A DNA stretch of 64,000 nucleotides from Podarcis melisellensis. Its lineage: Eukaryota. The translations under genes and the position numbers were made by a program. The stretch lies in the NCBI GenBank assembly GCA_964234715.1, contig OZ174288.1, one strand, 5' to 3'. Below, piece after piece: positions 1 to 10,400 of this stretch; positions within the stretch are counted from its first letter, which is position 1; every line of letters starts with the position of its first letter. Below the pieces are notes generated by a model. That model saw only the letters and a list, made by a program, of their open reading frames with translations. It searched no databases and was not told the DNA's origin.

Positions 1-2571
1 CACACGTGTTGTTTCCCAGGCCCTGTCCTTACCTGTGGTGCAGAGTCTCAAGTGGGGATCAGGAGGGGTGGCAGGGCAAAGGTAGGGCTTACTAAGTCGA
101 CTGGAGCACCTGTCAAGCAGCCAGTCTCTCATTGCAAGGAGCAGTGCTTGGCAAGCTAGCAGCTTCTTGGCCTCAAGCCTGCCTGCCCCTGCCCCACAGT
201 CAGTAGACAGGCAAGAGGACTCATCTCTCCTTGCAAATGTGCTCCAAAGGTGAGAGAAACAGCACCCATCCCATCCCATGCTTTATTCCCTAAACTCCTA
301 GTATAAACAGAAGGCAGGCGCTCTCTCAGTGAAGGGCCAATCCTGCAGGAAGTGTGGAGGGGCGTCCCTTACAAAAAATCATGCTGAGAGCCCTGAGGGG
401 TTAGGCCACTGGCAGGGAAAGCAGTAAGGGAGTTCTCAGGATGTGCCTCATGGGGTTTTATGCACCTCCAAAATAAAGGAATGGAAACTGGGGGCAGAGC
501 AACCGCCTTTGCACATTGAAAGGTCCCAGATTCAATCCCTGGGAACAGCTTAAGGGAAAAAAACAAAAAGGTCAGCTAACAGGCAGTGGAAAAGGTAGAA
601 CTGCAAAGTCATTTGAATCATTAACTGGAAGTATGACAGGACATAGGCAAGCATGCACAGATCCCACCCTTAAAAGAAATACAGCCAATTAAGAGAAAAA
701 ACGAAGCCCTAATTACAAACCATTCTGAAAGGACTTGTGCCAGCTTTATGAATGATTAATGCAATCTAATTCTGATTGCGGTCAATGAGAAATGAGAATC
801 TAAGAAGAACTCCTGGAAATGGAGTATGGAGTGGTTATGGTCCAAAATCTTTCAGGGGAGATACCACCAGGGATCGAGCCTGGGACCTTCTGTGTGTGAA
901 GCCTGAGCAGTGGTCCTCCATTGCCTTCCTTCTCAGTCAGCTTATTCAGAGCAGAGGAGGTCCCTCTGCAACCCACATCTGTGATAGACAACAGGTAGAT
1001 AATTCACACTTAAATGCAGTCTTCAGTTTGGCAGCTCCCTCCACAACTTTTAAATAACCAGGAATGAGTCTAAAGGGATTCTATATCCAGTTACTTCTTC
1101 AGTTTGACCCAATGTTTCATGTTCCAAAATTTAACAATAATTGATTTTTTTGTTAATGGACACAATCAATGTTTTGATTCTATAGGGCAGCATCCAGCAA
1201 AGTAGTGTGAGAATCTCTGGTTGTATCGCAGAGCTCCCTCCTCACTTTCTTCTCCCCATGCACCCCCTAAATCTGTTCCAGAATCCCTACCCCACTCTGA
1301 ACGGCATTAGGGGACAACACAGGCAGAGGGAGGGGAAGTTCCATTGCACAAACAGAACAATGGAACCACACGTAATCTCTCCTGCAGAGTCAAACCGCTG
1401 CATTGGCAGCTCTGAAGTGACCTTCCATGGAGCGCAAGCCTGGACAGTGCGTATGGAGGTCCTTATCTCCCAGGTGACACCCTCTTGGCCTTGCTGATGT
1501 GGTCCAAAGGAAAGCAAAACAATACATTTGGCACCAGCTTGGTTGCCAGAAGCAGGTGTATGAGGTGCTATTCTTTCTTTGTAGGGTTTACTCCTTTTCT
1601 TGTCCTGAAGATATCCCACAAGGCAGTGGAGGTTTAGGATCAGTGTCTTCCTTCTCCTTGGTAGGCTACCTTCCCAGGTTGACGAGCCACATCTGACCCT
1701 CACTCCCTCTACTACAGCATGTGCAGAAACCGCCTCCTGACTGTTGGACCCACTACTGGTCTCGTCTGCTCAATCCACTGGAGCCTGTCTTCGCATGCAG
1801 AGAAAGTCCCTAACTCATGGAGGGTTTGAGACCCATCGGTTACCCTCATCAAAAGGTGTAGATCTAGGCAGTGACAAAACCCTGAGTGTTACAAATGCAA
1901 CCAAGAACACCAGTGACACTATTAGGAAGCCAACTGCAAACTTTTGTTGCCTACAGCTTGGGGGTTTCCCACAGGGTTAGGGTTCGGTACCTGGTTGGCC
2001 ACTGTGAAAACAGGATGCTGGCTAGATCCAGTAGGCTCTTCTTACATTCTTATAGTAGATGCATATTATCTAGCCCAGTAAAACCCATACTCAAGAGGTA
2101 CTCCTGGATTCTTGGCTGTTTGTTCTGTAGAAGCCTGCCCCCCGCCCCCACCAATATGGGATGCTGCCCAGAAAGCGCTTGTCTGTCTCTCCTGATGTTG
2201 AACACAGCAGGTGCCTGGATTCTGAGGCCTGCCTTGGTGTAAAAAGCCCCCTGGGCCTTTCTCCTGAGCTGAAGACCCCGCTGGGGAGGCTCCTGACCAC
2301 ATCGTTTCCCCCCACTACTAGGCCAAACTCTGGCCCCTCCCATTAGCCAGGTCGCTTCCCTAATGGATCTTCCCTGCCCCCAGCTTGGCAAGGTCCCTGC
2401 AGAGGCAAGCCGTTAAGTGCAGCCTGGCCTAATGGCGCAGGGAGGTGCTTGATGGTACCCGGTAATGGATGCGGGAGCCAGGCAGCTCTGTGTGGTTTCT
2501 CTGCTTTCCCTCCCTAGGAGGAGACAGTCAGAGCTGCCTCAGCCTTCAACACTGCTGCCGCTGCCGGGAAG

Positions 2572-4260
2572 ATGCTGCTCTTGCCCTGCCTGCTGCTGCT
2601 GGCCTTTCTCAGGACAGGTACCTGCATCTGGTCTCCCTTCTCTCCCTTCCCCACCAGCCCAGTAGCCCCCCAGGAGCTCCAACTTGCCATGCCAAAACCT
2701 CACTTTGAAATTGCAGTCTCTATAGCCTCCCAGGGGCTTCTCAGCCCATGTGCAGATCTGCTTCGAGCAAGACTCTAATTCTTAGGGGCTTCAGGGCCAT
2801 CTTAGAGCTAAGTAAAAGCCCTGTTTGTAGGGTGCCACTTGCTCTGGGGTGTCCCATCAGCTGGAGGAAGGAATCAAGCCAGGATCCAAGCATGTTGACA
2901 AGGAATGATGGGCCTGTGTTTGTGTGCATGACAATTGGGAGTGCGTGTGTGAATGTGTTTGAGACAGAGAGTTAAGCTTGTGTTCATAGGCCAGTTTGCC
3001 TGCAAGTGCTCTGCTCAGTTTCCCAGTCAGTAGGAGGAAAACCTTTCCCAGCTCCTTGCATCTTGCAACCCAAGGACAACTTCACCAGACAGACCAAAAG
3101 TCTGCCTTGCCAATGCAGATCTGTCTGATCAGAACTGGGTACCCTCAAATCCCTTAGCACAGAACCAGTCACCTTCAGTCTTTACTGGGTTTGGCTTTAC
3201 TCTTTATGGGAAACAAATGTCCCTGGACCCTGGGTGCTGGTTGTTTGATCTGGCTCAGGGCAGGAAGTGGTTCTCCTCTAGCAGAAGTGGCTGCGACTTT
3301 GCAGCCTTAATTATTAGGATACTTTCCCTCGCTGTTCAGCCCGCTTCCACAGCACTGCCAACTACTCTATTGCCATGCGACGGAAGAGACGCTGAAACGG
3401 CAGTCCCTGGGCTCGCCTGCCCCCTCCCCGGGGTCCTCCTGTGTGGGCTTTCAGCAGGGCTGAAGCGGCAGTATCCTCCCCCCTCCCCGCAATTCTCCCG
3501 CGAGCCCCGGCAGGGAGGGCAGCCCCCCGAGCACCCCGCTTGTTCCAATCGCTTCCTCTTTCCAGCTGGTACCCAAAACGTGCACCTTTGCGAGGGCTAC
3601 CTGGACCCCGCCGGGTTCCACCACGCCGGCTTCTACTGCCCACGCCTCACCGACCCCCCGACCCACGCCTACTGCTGCCTGCCTGCCGCCTCTCGCCGCT
3701 TCAAGTCCTGCTGCCCACGGCCCGAATTTGAGAGACTCCGCGGCAATGCCTCGGCTTCTGCTCCGCCAGCCGCGCCCCGGTGAGATGCCCTTGTGGGGGG
3801 ACGGACGGAAGGGGCGGCGAGGGGGGTTGGGGGTTCCCCTCTGCCCCTCTTCCTCCCTCCCTTCCGTCTGAGCCCGCTTTCCCTCCACAGGAGCCCGCTG
3901 GGGCCGCTGCTGGGCGTGGGGCTCTACGGCTGCCTCGTCCTGGCCCTCATGACCGTCGACTTCCTTCACTTCTACCGCCTCCACCAGCGCAGCTTCCACC
4001 GCCTCCTCCACCGACGAATCCTCGGGAGGTGCCCCTGCAAGAAACAGGAAACCGGCAAGAAGGCACGCGGGGCGGGCGGGGCGGGAGGTGGAGCAGCTCC
4101 GCTCGCGGGCCGCCCGGTCTCTTCTCCGCTGGGCGCTCCAAGGGAGGCGCTGCCAGCACGTGGGTCGGCTAGGGAGCGGCTGTCGCGCTCGCGTGGCGTC
4201 ACTAGAGCGCGCCATGGAGGAGACGTCGGTGAGTGGGGTGGGCGGTGGGAGCCCAGCTGA
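2572..4260 (+). CDS. Shisa-like single-pass membrane protein (SHISAL1/KIAA1644-like paralog), 3 coding exons, 209 aa
   Basis: Exons 2572-2617 (MLLLPCLLLLAFLRT, AG|gtacct, phase 1), 3566-3779 (ttcctctttccag|, CG|gtgaga, phase 2) and 3891-4260 (ccctccacag|). Phases match at both junctions, total 630 nt. The ectodomain HLCEGYLDPAGFHHAGFYCPRLTD..YCC..FKSCC..EF and TM segment LLGVGLYGCLVLALMTVDFLHFY resemble recalled SHISAL1 motifs (CEPYTD..HFGFHCPRLSD..CC..FKYCC..EF; LLGVWIYG). An acceptor at 2516-2517 implies an upstream non-coding exon. Confidence 0.8.
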
Positions 4261-4480
4261 CCCCCAAACCGAATCGCTCATCCACCCCGCCCCTCTTATC
4301 TCCGCAGGTCCCGGAGCTCCGCCGGGAGGGCAACGAGCTCTTCCAGACAGGCCGCTATGAAGAGGCGCTGGCCGCCTACACCCGGGCCCTCAGCCTCTGC
4401 CCTGGGGATGGCGAGGAGCCCGACCCGCACCGCGCTGTCCTCCACCGCAACCGCGCCGCCTGCCACCTCAAGCTGGTGAG
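3400..4480. promoter_or_regulatory. CpG island spanning Shisa-like exons 2-3 and the UNC45A promoter/first exons
   Basis: Dense CG dinucleotides. GC boxes (ggggcgggcggggcggg, ~4069-4085) lie ~130 bp upstream of the UNC45A ATG. Confidence 0.7.
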
Positions 4481-7400
4481 TGGGGAAGTGAGGAAAGCGG
4501 GAGGGTTGCCCGAGTTATGGGAGCCCCCAAGGGGCATTGCCAGCCTGCCTACCTGCCGCTCACTTCTGCAGGAGGAGAAAAGCTGGACACTCTTGGGGAA
4601 AATTTAAGGGATTATTCCCACGTGTCTTTTCTTCTTAAAATTCTCAAGTGACGTAGCACGCATCAGAAGGTAGCAGGCATTGTGTGTGTGTGAGTTTCCC
4701 CCTAAATGGCCACAGAGCTTCCCTGTGCCCCCAGTGTCAACGTTTCTGTGCATCTCTCATTTTAACTATGCTGAGCCCCTTTAGGTGGACTTCTTTTCAC
4801 CCTGCTGCTCCTTAGAAGGTGAGGTGCCTTTATGCACAGTCAAGGGGAGCCCTCGGGGCATGGCTGTCTGGCTATGAGGTACTGAGAAGACAGTGGCGGA
4901 GAGGCCAGCCTGATGCCTTGCCTCCTCCTCCTCCTCCTCCTCCTCCTCCTCCTCCTCCTGTAACCTGTAGAGAATTTAGGATTTGACAGATGTCCCCCAG
5001 AAAGGTGGTCAGGGCTGTCATTTTCAGCCTGAGCTCCTCTTGAGTATTTTCTTTTACGCTCACTCTCCACTCCCTTATATCTCCTTTCACCAATGCCTCT
5101 CTGGCATTCTGCTTCTTTTGCAGGAGGACTATGTCCAGGCAGAACTGGATGCTTCTAAAGGTGAGCTGCAAGGGGTGGGGTGGGGGATTACGCTCCTTCC
5201 AGAAGTCTCTTTCTCTGCAGAAGCCTCTTTGCTGCCTCTTAATACTTTCTTGCCTGTTCACAGCCATAGAAGCTGATGGGCACGACGTGAAGAGCCTCTT
5301 CCGGCGCAGCCAAGCCCGGCAGAAACTGGGCCGCCTCGACCAGGCCCTCCTGGACCTGCAGAGGTGTGTGAGCCTGGAGCCCAAGAACAAGGCCTTCCAG
5401 GAGGCTCTGCGCAACCTTGGCAGCAGCATGCATGAGAAGGTAGGAGAAGCATCGGGGGGGGGGGGCGGAGTAGGGCATTTCCAGGGTAGGCACCTCCCTT
5501 GTGGGGCAGCCTAGCTCTCCACCCAGGAAGGATTCTCGGCTTCAGGTGTGTACTGGGCTTCTGAAGTATGACTGTGGGGTTTCTCACCAACTGCCTGTTT
5601 GCCTCAGATGACAGCCATGTCCCGCACAGACTCCAAAGTGGAGCAGATGTTTAAGTTGCTATTGGACCCTGAAGAAAAAGATCTGGACAAGAAACAAAAG
5701 GTACTCATCTAACCAGTAAGCGAGTGGGAGGTGTGATGTGCTCTGATGAAGAGCAACTTTGCGTGTGCTGCAACTGTACATATATGGGATGCAATTGTAG
5801 AATTAGGCAGTCTCCGGTTCTGTTTTCTATTTCAAAATGCAAGTTTTGTATTTCCAAAGTTGCCTGTAGGCAAAAGCCAGAGCGAGGGTTTCTGATGCCT
5901 GGATCAGGATACCTGAGGGAGGAAGGGAGGAGGACTTTGAGTCATTATACCGTAACTTCCTTTTCTGTGACTGACAAAACCAGAATATATTAGGGTGGTG
6001 CTTATTTTAATATGATCAGTCTCAGTCAAGAGTGATTCATTCTGTCTCATGGGATTTGTATACCGCCCTTCATCCAACAATCACAGGGCGGTTCATAACA
6101 TAAAGTCATGCTAATGTTGATGGGAGTTACAGTGCAGCAGCACCTGGGGGGACTCTGCAGGCTTCCCAGCTCTGCCCAATGAGGAGATCCCCACCACCAT
6201 GGCTCTTAGAGAAGCAAGGACAATGGAGTTATTATGGGCCAGAATCTCCAAACCTCTCCAGCTCTAAATTCTGGCTGTGCCCCTCCAACAACTGTGTGGC
6301 CTGATGGGGAGCGGTTAAAGCGAGCCCCTTTGTCCAGCTAACTGGCTCTTCTCCTGTCCAGGCAGCTCAGAATTTGATTGTTTTGGCTCGTGAGGAGCCT
6401 GGTGCTGAGAAGATTTTCCAGAACGACGGGGTGCGCCTCCTGCTCCAGCTGCTGGATACAGGTCGGGTGGACACGGTGCTAGCAGCTGTGCGAACCCTCA
6501 CTGGCCTTTGCAGTGGGCATCGTTCTCGGGTATGTCCACTTTTTAAGATGAAAGCTTCTTCACTCTTTTTTTTGGGGGGGGGGTTAACAGGTTCAGTCCG
6601 TTTGCTGACAGGTTATGTATAAAACACTCTCCAAAACCTGTTGCTTCAAGGGCACGCCACTACTCCGAGGGTGTGTGTGCCTGGAACTTGTCCCTGACCT
6701 TGTACTGCATCTTTGAAATGCCTCAGGAGGTCAGGGGCAAACCAAGTGATCTCTTCTGTCTCCCTACAGTACAGAGCCAGGGAGGGGCTGCAGACGCACT
6801 TGGGCTTTCTCTGCCTCTGCACCTGCTTATAGGTTGCCACCCCATTCTCCTGGCAGGCACAGAGTTGAGTTTTCGCCCATGTTTCAGGCTGGGGAAGGGG
6901 ATGGAATCACCCCTCTCTCTCTGCTCCTCCAGTGTTGAGAGGAAACCTTGGGCTTCCTATTTGCTGGAGTCTGGCTAACCACCAGTGATTCACAAAGAGT
7001 GCTCTCCAACAGTTCCTTCTCCAGTGACACGTGGGGTACTGCAGGGTTCTGTCCTGGGCCTGGTGTTGTTCAACCTCTTGGAATGGACACCCTCCAGGTG
7101 GTGGACTCTCCTTCATTGGAGGCTTTAAAGCAGAGTTTGGATGGGCACCTGTCAGGAATACTTTAGTTGTGATTCCTGCATTTCAGAGGGTTGAACTGGG
7201 TGCCTTCCAACCCTACAATTCTATGATCACCTACTGTGGCGGACAGAGAGCTAGCAAGACTGTTGAATCCTCAAGTAATGCATGCTGCAAGATAACCTAG
7301 ATATATAAACCAGTGAACTCTGTCTCCTTGGGTAAGTTTATGGGTCCCCAGAGTTCCTACTGACAAACCACAGTTACACTTGTGGAGTTGTCTACTAGGC

Positions 7401-10400
7401 AGGTATCCAGCTCTGCTCTGAGCGTTGTGGGGAAGGTAACTGGTTCTTGAGAGACAGGCCTAGATTCCTCCCCAAGTCTCAGTGGATGCTGCCCTTCTTT
7501 CAGACGGCAGTGATCCTGGCTGAGCTGGGGCCGCAGCGCCTCTTTGCTATCCTAGAGATGGAGGACGAGCAAGTCTCGCTGGCAACCTACAGCCTGCTGC
7601 AGGTTATGTTTGATGCCCTCAAGGAGGGGCTGCAGAGGGATGTGCGTGGCAAGGAGGAAGCTGTTGTCTTGGGTGAGTCTCTTGGGTGCCTCCCTGATGG
7701 GCTGAGCATCCACTTGGTGTCGTGCCAAGCTCATCTTCGTGCTGATACCTTGGGTGGAGCTGGGCTGTGAATGCTGGCCTGGAGCAGAGGAGGCTCAGAC
7801 CTCCTCCACTCTGATTCTGCTCCTGTAGATACATCCAAAGAGCTGAAATTGCTCCTCAAGCAGCTGCTGGAAGCCCTGACACGGGAGAGCATTTCCTCCT
7901 ATGGCCGGGACAGCATCCTCAACCTGCTGATCAGTGTGGTGCCCCGGAAGTCGCTGAAGGACCCCAACAACTGCCTGACCCTCTGGGTCATTGACCAGGG
8001 TACGTCTAGCCCATTCCCGAGCCCCTCCTCTTCCTGGCCTGGGTCACTTGCCAGCGCCAGTGAGCATGTCTGTCCTCGCTAGGTTTCAAGCAGATCCTGG
8101 AGGTGGGGGGCACAGTGAGCCACAGTCCTGGGGGCCTGCGGGTGACAGAGAACACCCTCATGAGCGCAGCCGTCCTCCTCAGCAAGCTCTATGGGGACCT
8201 GAAGTGCGATGGGGAGCGGGAGAATTTCCACCGGCTCTGCGAGGACTATGTCAGGTAGGTCTGTGACTGACTCGGGGGCCGCCCCCTGCTGCTTCTGAAA
8301 GGGGGTGCTGGGAAGGCATGGGGGGGCCAATGAAGTAGTGCAGAAGTGGTGGGGAGTGATGCTCAGCGCCTAGCTGCTGACAGACATTGAAAGCGTCACA
8401 ACAGCCCACCAGCTTGGCCAGAGACACCCAGTTACTGTAGTTCATGTACTGGTTGCTTCAAGACTGGATTACTGCAGTGCGCTCTATATGGGGCTTCCCT
8501 TGCACCTGATCTGGAAGCTGAAGCTAGCACAGAATGCTGCAGCTTGATTGCTGAAAGGAGCAAAAACTTGTCAGCATATAGCACCCATGCTCAGAGATCT
8601 GTACTGGTTGCTGATTTGCTACCGAGACAAGTTCAAAAGGTTACTATTAGTATGCAAAGCCCTTAATAATTTACCTGTGAGATTGCCTTAACCCAGATAT
8701 GCTCACTCGACCACTTCCATCTGCAGAATTGGCACTGTTCCAAGTGCCATATATTACCCGTTCTGCATTTATAAGAAATGGATCTTCTAGTGTGGCGATA
8801 TCAGGCAGGCGCCTTCATTCTACTCTTTGCGGCGTCTGCTGAAAACATTTTTGTGTAGTAAGCCTACCCATATATTTAAAACGCTGGTGTGTTTTTAGTT
8901 TATTGCTGGTTTTAATTTTTAGAATGTGTTGTTTGTACTAATAATCTTACTGTTTTATTCTTTTTATAAACTACTTTGAGGTTTTCTACAATCACGTGAT
9001 ATATAGATGTTATGAAATAAATACATAATAGTGGGTGGGAGGAGGACTTTTGCTGCCAGAAGGTGCCGTTGGTTGATCTCAGATTTGAGACTCCAGCCTT
9101 CTTTCTGGTGCAGAGCTTGGGGTTTCAGCTTTGGAATGTCTGTGGCAGCTTCCTGGCTTCTCCTGATGAGCTGCCTTTCTTTCACCTCCCAGGGGCTGGT
9201 TCCAGGACCACGGCGTCCCTGGGAAATTGCGGGCCATCCAGACGGCCTCCTGTCTCCTGCAAGGCCCCTCCGAGGCTGGGAACAGGGTGCTGGAGCTGAG
9301 TGGCATCATGGAGAGCATTCTGGCCTTGTGCGCCTCGTCGCAGGAGGCCGACCAGCTTGTGGCCGTGGAGGCCCTGATCCATGCTGCCGACAAGGCCAAG
9401 CGGGCCACCTTCATCACTGCCAATGGGGTGACACTACTGAAGGAGATCTACAAGCACAGCGAGCGCGACAGCATTCGCATCCGGGCCCTGGTGGTGAGCA
9501 AGAGGCAGCAGATCTTGGAGAAGGAGGGAGCCATTTTCTGGCTGCAGTGGGACCCCACACTGTTCCTCTTCCATCTTCCCAGATTGAAGGAAGTTCTGGG
9601 GTCAGGTGGCAACTGCGGCACATCACGGTTTCTCTTTCCAGGGCCTCTGCAAATTGGGCTCGGCGGGGGGCACAGATTTCAGCATGAAGCAGTTTGCGGA
9701 AGGCTCTACCCTGAAGCTGGCCAAGCAGTGCCGGAAGTGAGTGAGCGCTGCTTTCTTCCCCCATGTCCCAGGCGCTTTAGCCTCTTCTGTGCCACGTGAC
9801 TGCCTTCCCCTTTAGAAGGAGGTCAGGCTGCCTGTCCCTTTCTCAAAATTTTGGGGGCTGGTGGGAGCTGACAGATGACAAGAATGAGTCCCTCTGGCAG
9901 CTGCACAACAGACCATGCCCCACTGAAGCCTGGGGTGGTGGGGCTTCCTATGCTCCTTGCCCACTAGGGTCTCAGCTAGTAGAGGCACTAGGGATGGATC
10001 CTGATTCTCCTTCTCCTGCTTCCAGGTGGCTGTGCAATGAGGCCATTGATGCCGGCACCCGCTACTGGGCAGCTGAGGGACTGGCCTTCCTCTCCTTGGA
10101 TGCGGACGTTAAGGAGGAGCTCCTGGAGGACAAGGCTGCTCTGCAGGCTCTTTTCTGGCTGGCCAGGGTGAGGTCCTCTTCCAAAAGGGAGGGCAAAGTG
10201 GGTGGGTGGGAGGAATGGGCAGCTGGGCATGTCCAGAGGCTCTTATTGCCTCTGCCTTGTTTATGTTCAATTTCCCTTGCTTAGGAATAGCAACCCAGCT
10301 GTAGTATATGGTACCCAGTAATTTGTAGAATTGTAGAATTGGAAGAGGTCCCAAGGCTCATCTAGTCCAATCCCTGCAATGCAGGAATTACAGCTAAAAA

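Follow-up and report, generated by a model that had tools for sequence, protein, structure and literature searches.

Among the Shisa proteins, Shisa1-3 act on the maturation of Wnt and FGF receptors and Shisa6-9 act on AMPA receptors. The human gene of the Shisa-like protein SHISAL1 (KIAA1644) is located on chromosome 22. For human and mouse, a recent survey of the Shisa family reported no Shisa-like genes other than 1, 2a, and 2b (PMC10531659). The true SHISAL1 adjoins RTL6/PRR5 in eutherians, and the SHISAL1-PRR5 region of chicken has been used as well (bioRxiv 10.1101/2021.12.29.474483). In our study, a stretch of 64,000 nucleotides from the lizard Podarcis melisellensis (NCBI GenBank assembly GCA_964234715.1, contig OZ174288.1), hereafter called the window, was found to contain a Shisa-like gene on the plus strand at nucleotides 2572–4260. 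The gene is a real small membrane-protein gene of the Shisa family and of the SHISAL1 (KIAA1644) type. It is probably an intact ortholog of an old Shisa-like gene that is the sister paralog of SHISAL1. The position of this old gene, immediately 5' of UNC45A and in the same orientation, dates back at least to the common ancestor of ray-finned fishes and tetrapods.

The window gene contained three coding exons of 46 + 214 + 370 = 630 nucleotides, encoding 209 codons and a stop, with the introns in phase 1 and then in phase 2 (Table 1). The ATG at 2572 was found in the context GGGAAGATGC. Exon 1 ended at the donor CAG/GTACCT (GT at 2618), followed by the acceptor ...CTCTTTCCAG and the donor CCG/GTGAGA of exon 2. 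The exons were translated, searched and modelled one by one, or as natural open reading frames (ORFs). The leader encoded by exon 1, MLLLPCLLLLAFLRT, was hydrophobic (Kyte-Doolittle 2.17), and the hydropathy of the exon 3 piece showed a single hydrophobic span, LGVGLYGCLVLALMTVDFL (Kyte-Doolittle 1.98), followed by RCPCKK and a Gly/Ala/Arg-rich tail. Hydropathy and exon order support a type I order of leader, ectodomain and one transmembrane span. An earlier interpretation of the window (the sequence-only reading) had joined the three pieces through GT-AG sites of phases 1 and 2 into a protein of 209 amino acids, and this can be read directly from the sequence; the leader, the C-C-CC-CC ectodomain, the NAS sequon and the single transmembrane span that it described were all present in the exon translations. 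Its suggestion that RCPCKK may be palmitoylated fared differently. The motif was present, and in the alignment one of its cysteines was common to turtles (HRCP) and none to amphibians or mammals; the palmitoylation reading was dropped because the motif is not conserved. The low-complexity tail was present too, with conservation of exon 3 limited to about 3891–4035 and the last ~75 codons unconserved.

Membership of the Shisa family, which the sequence-only reading had proposed together with the SHISAL1 (KIAA1644) type, was borne out by domain, fold and motifs. The exon 2 piece matched the Pfam Shisa_N domain (PF13908) with E = 7.7e-5 and 23.1 bits, above the cutoff of 22. An exhaustive HMMER scan of 1.84 billion representative proteins with exon 2 found 89 relatives, the best with E = 8e-17 and 61% identity, and the exon 3 piece aligned to the transmembrane region of the same proteins. 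The family profile matched the solved N-domain of mouse Shisa-3 (5m0w) with E = 2.7e-6. The exon 2 piece was also modelled with AlphaFold (AF2) from a 52-row alignment, giving a predicted local distance difference test (pLDDT) of 70, which is moderate confidence. In the Foldseek search with this model the top PDB match was again 5m0w (probability 1.00, template-modelling score 0.53/0.58), with a root mean square deviation of 2.3 A, 31% identity over 48 columns and E = 0.08, followed by matches with E > 1.9. The residues C8, F22, C24, P25, R26, L27, C36, C37, C48, and C49 were invariant in 52 sequences that include the true SHISAL1. The window gene contained the cysteine pattern C-x15-C-x11-CC-x10-CC and the G-F-x-C-P-R-L motif of the SHISAL1-type subfamily, and the column of the Asp in the transmembrane helix was at least 90% conserved in the 52-sequence alignment.

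Like SHISAL1/KIAA1644, the window gene encodes a signal peptide, six cysteines and G-F-x-CPRL in the ectodomain, a site for an N-glycan and an Asp-containing transmembrane helix. The motifs of SHISAL1 were AHFRVCEPY..GFHCPRLSDNKT..FKYCCNETEF and LxGVWIYGF, whereas those of the window gene were NVHLCEGY..GFYCPRLTDPP..FKSCCPRPEF and LLGVGLYG. The Shisa_N domain, the fold and the single-pass type I layout are shared with Shisa-3 (5m0w) and Shisa1-9. Unlike in Shisa1-9, the cytoplasmic part was much shorter and the tail lacked a proline-rich PPxY region; a role in Wnt/FGF or AMPA-receptor regulation is not indicated for the window gene. No PPxY or LPxY motif was found in the exon 3 translation, and recruitment of NEDD4-type ligases is therefore not suggested; in the SHISAL1-type relatives compared, PY motifs were likewise weak or lacking. 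SHISAL2A and SHISAL2B (FAM159A/B) have been proposed as transmembrane adaptors, with a function likewise unknown (PMC9655893). They resemble the window gene as small single-pass Shisa-like proteins, whereas eight conserved cysteines were described in them (PMC9655893) and six are found in the window gene. Neither was recovered by the HMMER scan with window exon 2 or by the family profile search.

The product would be a small type I membrane protein, from which the signal peptide encoded by exon 1 is presumably cleaved. Judging from the sequence and the model, exon 2 would form an ectodomain of ~70 residues with the Shisa fold, three disulfides and one N-glycan at the conserved sequon, followed in exon 3 by one predicted transmembrane helix, in which an almost unchanging Asp lies close to the cytoplasmic end, and by a short basic stretch next to the membrane. 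By analogy, the protein would most likely act as a non-enzymatic transmembrane adaptor or auxiliary subunit, whose cysteine-rich domain and polar transmembrane helix may bind another membrane protein and alter its maturation, trafficking or turnover.

The relatives of the window gene were found to split into two groups. The true SHISAL1 group (AHFRVCEPY..GFHCPRLSDNKT) included opossum, mole-rat, teleosts and sawfish and showed ~43–45% identity over the exon 2 core, whereas the second group showed 45–61% identity to exon 2 and also matched exon 3. A maximum-likelihood tree with 41 rows was computed for the exon 2 piece and its relatives. In this tree, window exon 2 paired with the Logan contig L003 (90/73), and both fell within a starred clade of amniotes (100/99) that comprised mammals, birds and turtles. 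The true SHISAL1 sequences formed a separate starred clade with hagfish and two elasmobranch rows (100/98). Both clades contain fish and mammals, and therefore the duplication predates the split of ray-finned fishes and tetrapods, wherever the root lies. The blastp scores agreed with the tree, with 58–82 bits for exon 2 and 32–59 bits for exon 3 to the second group, versus 50–52 bits and 26–28 bits, respectively, to the true SHISAL1. The gene is thus best read, from these sequence comparisons, as a paralog of the true SHISAL1 and not as a relocated SHISAL1, and the proposal that it is a separate paralog was supported by the separate clades, the higher bit scores of both exons and the locus beside UNC45A. 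If it were the only SHISAL1 of the genome, moved beside UNC45A, it would be a translocated ortholog and not a paralog, an alternative that the sequence-only reading had kept in view. NCBI names members of the clade "protein shisa-like-1", which would fit this alternative, and of this genome the comparison covered the window. However, the true SHISAL1 forms its own clade, window exon 2 belongs to the other clade, which has members from fish to mammal, both exons score lower to the true SHISAL1, and the position adjacent to UNC45A is ancestral, not derived. The tree, the scores and the ancestral synteny thus contradict a translocation, which we consider highly improbable.

The genes of the second group were found beside UNC45A in the sampled loci with neighbours in reach. 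The order was MAN2A2+ / HDDC3- / gene+ / UNC45A+ in the prairie vole (Microtus ochrogaster, XP_026640037.1), HDDC3- / gene+ / UNC45A+ in the cat (Felis catus, P0159), MAN2A2+ / gene+ / UNC45A+ / RCCD1+ in Rhea pennata (XP_062439974.1), MAN2A2+ / gene+ / UNC45A+ in the turtle Mauremys reevesii (P0097) and MAN2A- / gene+ / UNC45+ in the sturgeon Acipenser ruthenus (P0014). L003 (run SRR32478113), the nearest relative of the window, showed the same layout beside UNC45A. The frog locus contained no neighbour genes within reach, and two elasmobranch loci contained none within 10 kb and were uninformative on synteny. The UNC45A-linked genes, named "protein shisa-like-1", "shisa-like-1a", or "uncharacterized" by NCBI, share with the window gene the clade and the position and strand relative to UNC45A, with 50–58% identity in exon 2 and 52–60% in the transmembrane region. 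The mammalian genes also share the three coding exons, and the turtle and Rhea copies share the promoter. They contain HLCQT in place of HLCEGY of the window in the mammalian copies, which also lack residues before the last CC pair. Unlike in all of them, the C-terminal tail of the window gene was unrelated, and it uniquely overlapped the UNC45A start codon.

A profile search found 111 members of this UNC45A-linked group, including many birds, turtles, frogs, salamanders and caecilians, bichir, sturgeon, gar, eel and salmonids, and one shark. Predicted orthologs were found in ~25 mammals, among them hamster, vole, squirrel, chinchilla, gopher, rabbit, shrew, mole and hedgehog, followed by cat, panda, raccoon dog, warthog, alpaca, reindeer, goat, whales and dolphin, and by elephant, sloth, pangolin, colugo and tarsier. 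Among the 111 matches there was none from human, mouse or rat. Several mammal-like Logan/ENA predicted proteins (P0020, P0023, P0024, P0036, P0177, P0178, and P0182–P0186) could be primate or human. The entry of the capuchin (Sapajus apella, P0181) contained the damaged motifs CPVS and SCY and a frameshifted transmembrane region, and this copy looks decayed. Intact predictions were observed in cricetid rodents and tarsier, unlike in the capuchin. The pattern may point to separate losses of the gene, one in the anthropoid primates and one in the murid rodents. The sequence-only reading had proposed a check for orthologs upstream of UNC45A in other vertebrates, had named none at this locus in mammals, and regarded the gene as kept in reptiles and lost in mammals. 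Such orthologs were found in turtle, bird and fish. The loss in mammals does not hold, as vole and cat carry the gene 5' of UNC45A on the same strand and ~25 mammals have predicted orthologs. The impression of absence probably arose because the 111 matches contain no human, mouse or rat row and the capuchin copy has damaged motifs. Its description of the gene as possibly uncharacterised was fair, since we found no paper treating the UNC45A-linked Shisa-like paralog. No squamate or crocodilian row was found among the 111 matches, and word-index searches with the exon 2 and exon 3 ORFs gave zero matches, which means no close annotated protein in that collection only. The window copy appears to be unannotated in squamates. 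A chimeric model of the gene was also observed in MetaClust (P0006), with a stretch IFKKGSRGDPGNYRP that resembles the reverse transcriptase of a long interspersed element (LINE).

The region upstream of the start codon was found to be conserved. With blastn, window 2339–2618 aligned to nucleotides 994–1239 of L003, and an alignment of four species (window, L003, Rhea, Mauremys) contained the invariant blocks TAATGGC, GTGGTTT, GCTGCC, and GGAAGATGC. The start-codon context was likewise invariant in these four sauropsids, and L003 encodes MLLWFLLLPPAFLRP at the place of the exon 1 start. Repeated (C)TAATGG motifs of the homeodomain type were observed in the promoter, three in the window (2340–2470) and four in L003 (995–1111), with one TAATGGC invariant across window, L003, Rhea and Mauremys; the corresponding promoter positions are about 9899 in L002 and about 9950 in L005. 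In L003 (1193–1320 and 1779–1965) the Shisa-like intron 1 was reduced to ~75 in-frame nucleotides, so that exons 1 and 2 form one ORF (P0013); UNC45A exons 1 and 2 were also fused, and the locus was extremely GC-rich and compact.

Conservation was also found in the coding exons. When window 1–6600 was compared by blastn with the turtle and Rhea loci, only the Shisa-like exons 2 and 3 and the UNC45A exons aligned, and the introns and spacers gave no alignment to turtle or Rhea. Exon 2 (3572–3737) showed 74–79% and exon 3 (3879–4009) 77–80% identity to turtle and Rhea. The division into three coding exons was found again in vole and cat, where a codon is likewise split immediately ahead of the transmembrane helix. 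Frameshifts in related lizards had been named as evidence against the gene; tblastn with eleven relatives found no frameshift in the window copy against any ortholog compared. The content of guanine and cytosine (GC) in the transmembrane part was 0.70/0.40/0.91 by codon position, which is a coding pattern. The Nei-Gojobori ratio of nonsynonymous to synonymous substitution rates (dN/dS) was 0.35 against Mauremys over 109 codons (chi-square 13.5). The dS between lizard and bird was 0.41 versus 0.92 between lizard and turtle, at equal divergence time; the bird dS is less than half of the turtle dS, and convergent GC content at third codon positions (GC3) is therefore indicated. The dN/dS against the GC-rich partners L003 and Rhea was rejected as a measure of constraint, since the shared GC3 bias lowers dS.

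Several findings weigh against an intact, functional ortholog. The dN/dS was 0.70 for the pair with L003 and 0.77 for the pair with Rhea, and neither value was significantly lower than 1, so that the dN/dS evidence on exons 2–3, which the sequence-only reading had proposed to compute, is favourable against turtle and not against these two. Constraint may have been relaxed in squamates. Open frames are cheap at 70% GC, and the end branches of the tree were 0.57 for the window and 1.57 for L003, compared with a median of 0.2. The RNA data consisted of assembled contigs from four runs of a related species, in which absence cannot be shown; these contigs gave no coverage of 3503–4170 and no joint 2617/3566 or 3779/3891. 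No AATAAA or ATTAAA was found in the window from the Shisa-like ATG to 9016, which leaves no canonical signal there for the end of an independent Shisa-like mRNA. The adaptor mechanism rests wholly on analogy with Shisa-family proteins. These findings bear on the possibility that the window copy is a recently inactivated or decaying one, a unitary pseudogene whose frame is open only because stops are rare at 70% GC. Such a copy would fit the missing support from the RNA contigs of the related species, the dN/dS of 0.70 against the nearest relative, the long branches of the two squamate-like rows, the absence of an annotated squamate protein from the word-index and profile searches, the decay seen in the capuchin, and the tail that is not coding-like. 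However, all invariant residues of the family are kept (six cysteines, F..CPRL, transmembrane Asp), the four splice sites and the start codon with its context are intact, no frameshift was found against any ortholog, the transmembrane part has the coding pattern of GC3 0.91 against 0.40 at second positions (GC2), the promoter block is conserved, and the dN/dS is 0.35 against turtle. Inactivation is thus improbable, and we favour an intact ortholog.

Contigs of low depth (3–10) covered 2001–3453 without splicing, a stretch that takes in the spacer, the first Shisa-like exon and the larger part of intron 1, and could be from genomic carry-over, nascent RNA or an unannotated transcript. The GC content of the Shisa-like region was 65–72%. 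Upstream of ~2003 the contigs of the related species departed from the window, and repeat-like pieces piled up at 2003–2057.

Table 1. Features of the Shisa-like gene and its neighbour UNC45A in the window, and the distance between the two genes in the species compared.
Feature	Position	Length	Strand	Description
Proximal promoter and 5' leader of the Shisa-like gene	2339–2571		+	Conserved; TAATGG at 2340 (minus strand), 2360, 2429
Coding exon 1	2572–2617	46 nt	+	Start codon, hydrophobic signal peptide MLLLPCLLLLAFLRT and first base of next codon
Intron 1	2618–3565	948 nt	+	Phase 1; GT..AG ends; without alignment to turtle or bird
Coding exon 2	3566–3779	214 nt	+	Shisa N-terminal Cys-rich ectodomain: C-C-CC-CC, GFYCPRL, NAS sequon
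Intron 2	3780–3890	111 nt	+	Phase 2; ends GTGAGA..CACAG; in-frame TGA 3781–3783
Coding exon 3	3891–4260	370 nt	+	Acceptor ...CCCTCCACAG, stop TGA 4258–4260
Conserved part of exon 3	3891–4035		+	Stalk, transmembrane helix (..LMTVDFLHFYR..), basic juxtamembrane stretch; aligns with all orthologs
Low-complexity end of ORF	4036–4260		+	Unconserved; crosses UNC45A CpG-island promoter, start codon and first donor
UNC45A coding exon 1 (MEETS)	4214–4228		+	Different frame from Shisa-like ORF; donor GT 4229; spliced RNA contig starts at 4219
UNC45A exon 2 (TPR)	4308–4474		+	Pfam TPR_1, TPR_2; downstream neighbour fixing synteny
Gap stop to UNC45A ATG, window		-47 nt		Overlap
Gap stop to UNC45A ATG, L003		18 nt
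Gap stop to UNC45A ATG, cat		198 nt
Gap stop to UNC45A ATG, vole		222 nt
Gap stop to UNC45A ATG, Rhea		1651 nt
Gap stop to UNC45A ATG, sturgeon		1683 nt
Gap stop to UNC45A ATG, Mauremys		3851 nt

The downstream gene was identified as UNC45A by the TPR exons 4308–4474 and 5262–5437 and the Pfam UNC45-central domain at 9227–9796. It was found to be spliced in the RNA contigs, with the joints 4474>5123, 5158>5262, 5437>5606, and 5698>6360. A micro-exon of 36 nucleotides (5123–5158) was observed, with the joints 4474>5123 and 5158>5262 in two runs. Contig X5 (depth 92) ran unbroken from UNC45A exon 1 (4219) through intron 1 (4229–4307) to 4474, which suggests intron retention or a start site inside UNC45A intron 1. 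Contig X8 started at 4307. Window 4914–4966 was found to contain a simple purine/pyrimidine tract whose translation is poly-Pro from one strand and poly-Gly or poly-Arg from the opposite one.

The conservation of exon 3 ended near 4035 (..HRRILGRCP), and the tail gave no alignment to turtle or bird. The last ~75 codons (~4036–4260) were without codon periodicity (GC by position 0.78/0.78/0.68), and the ORF overlapped the UNC45A start codon (4214) by 47 nucleotides, together with the first donor (4229). By these features the Gly/Ala/Arg-rich tail is best regarded not as a conserved functional part but as the ORF running through the GC-rich UNC45A promoter to a chance stop. An antisense ORF of 276 amino acids was also observed on the minus strand at 3451–4281, spanning Shisa-like exons 2–3 and the UNC45A start; in a sequence of 70% GC it is most likely a composition artefact.

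This arrangement raises the question of whether the Shisa-like exons are upstream exons of long UNC45A transcripts, as a read-through or two-cistron unit using the UNC45A 3' end. Such transcripts are compatible with a protein-coding Shisa-like gene, and the confidence in the two readings is not exclusive. The overlap with the UNC45A ATG, the small gaps in L003, cat and vole (Table 1), and the lack of a canonical poly(A) hexamer between the stop and UNC45A in the window, L003, cat, vole and Rhea are consistent with them. The owl model P0004 (Athene cunicularia, XP_026711825.1) was chimeric, with the Shisa-like exons running into UNC45A exon 3 sequence (LEDYAKAETDASK), and it could be taken to point the same way, whereas Gnomon fusions are often artefacts. 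The UNC45A contigs of the related species started at 4219 and 4307 and did not reach into Shisa-like exon 3, and with splicing from the donor after 4228 the Shisa frame would soon meet a stop in UNC45A exon 2. The gaps of turtle and sturgeon (1.7–3.9 kb) contained poly(A) hexamers, and therefore coupling to UNC45A is not ancestral. On these grounds long UNC45A transcripts are an unlikely explanation of the exons. It is equally doubtful that in the amniotes with tiny gaps (window, L003, cat, vole) the last exon has merged with the UNC45A promoter into a conserved, obligately coupled transcription unit; if so, read-through or shared-promoter interference would be expected to link the membrane adaptor with the myosin chaperone.

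The gene family and its UNC45A-linked paralog are already known as automatic predictions in many vertebrates, and the window copy is an apparently unannotated member. Vertebrates may have a fourth Shisa-like gene, sister to SHISAL1, which has possibly remained unnamed since it may be missing or decayed in human, mouse and rat. One database name ("shisa-like-1" or "-1a") covers two ancient genes, one linked to PRR5 and one linked to UNC45A. The gene is widespread in mammals, yet no human, mouse or rat match was found, and this would explain the missing name and functional data. For this genome, the window contributes one more protein-coding gene, which automatic annotation apparently overlooks in squamates, likely because of the extreme GC content, the small exons and the overlap with the UNC45A CpG island. 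With its very tight packing against UNC45A in the same orientation, the locus lends itself to studies of transcriptional interference or read-through.

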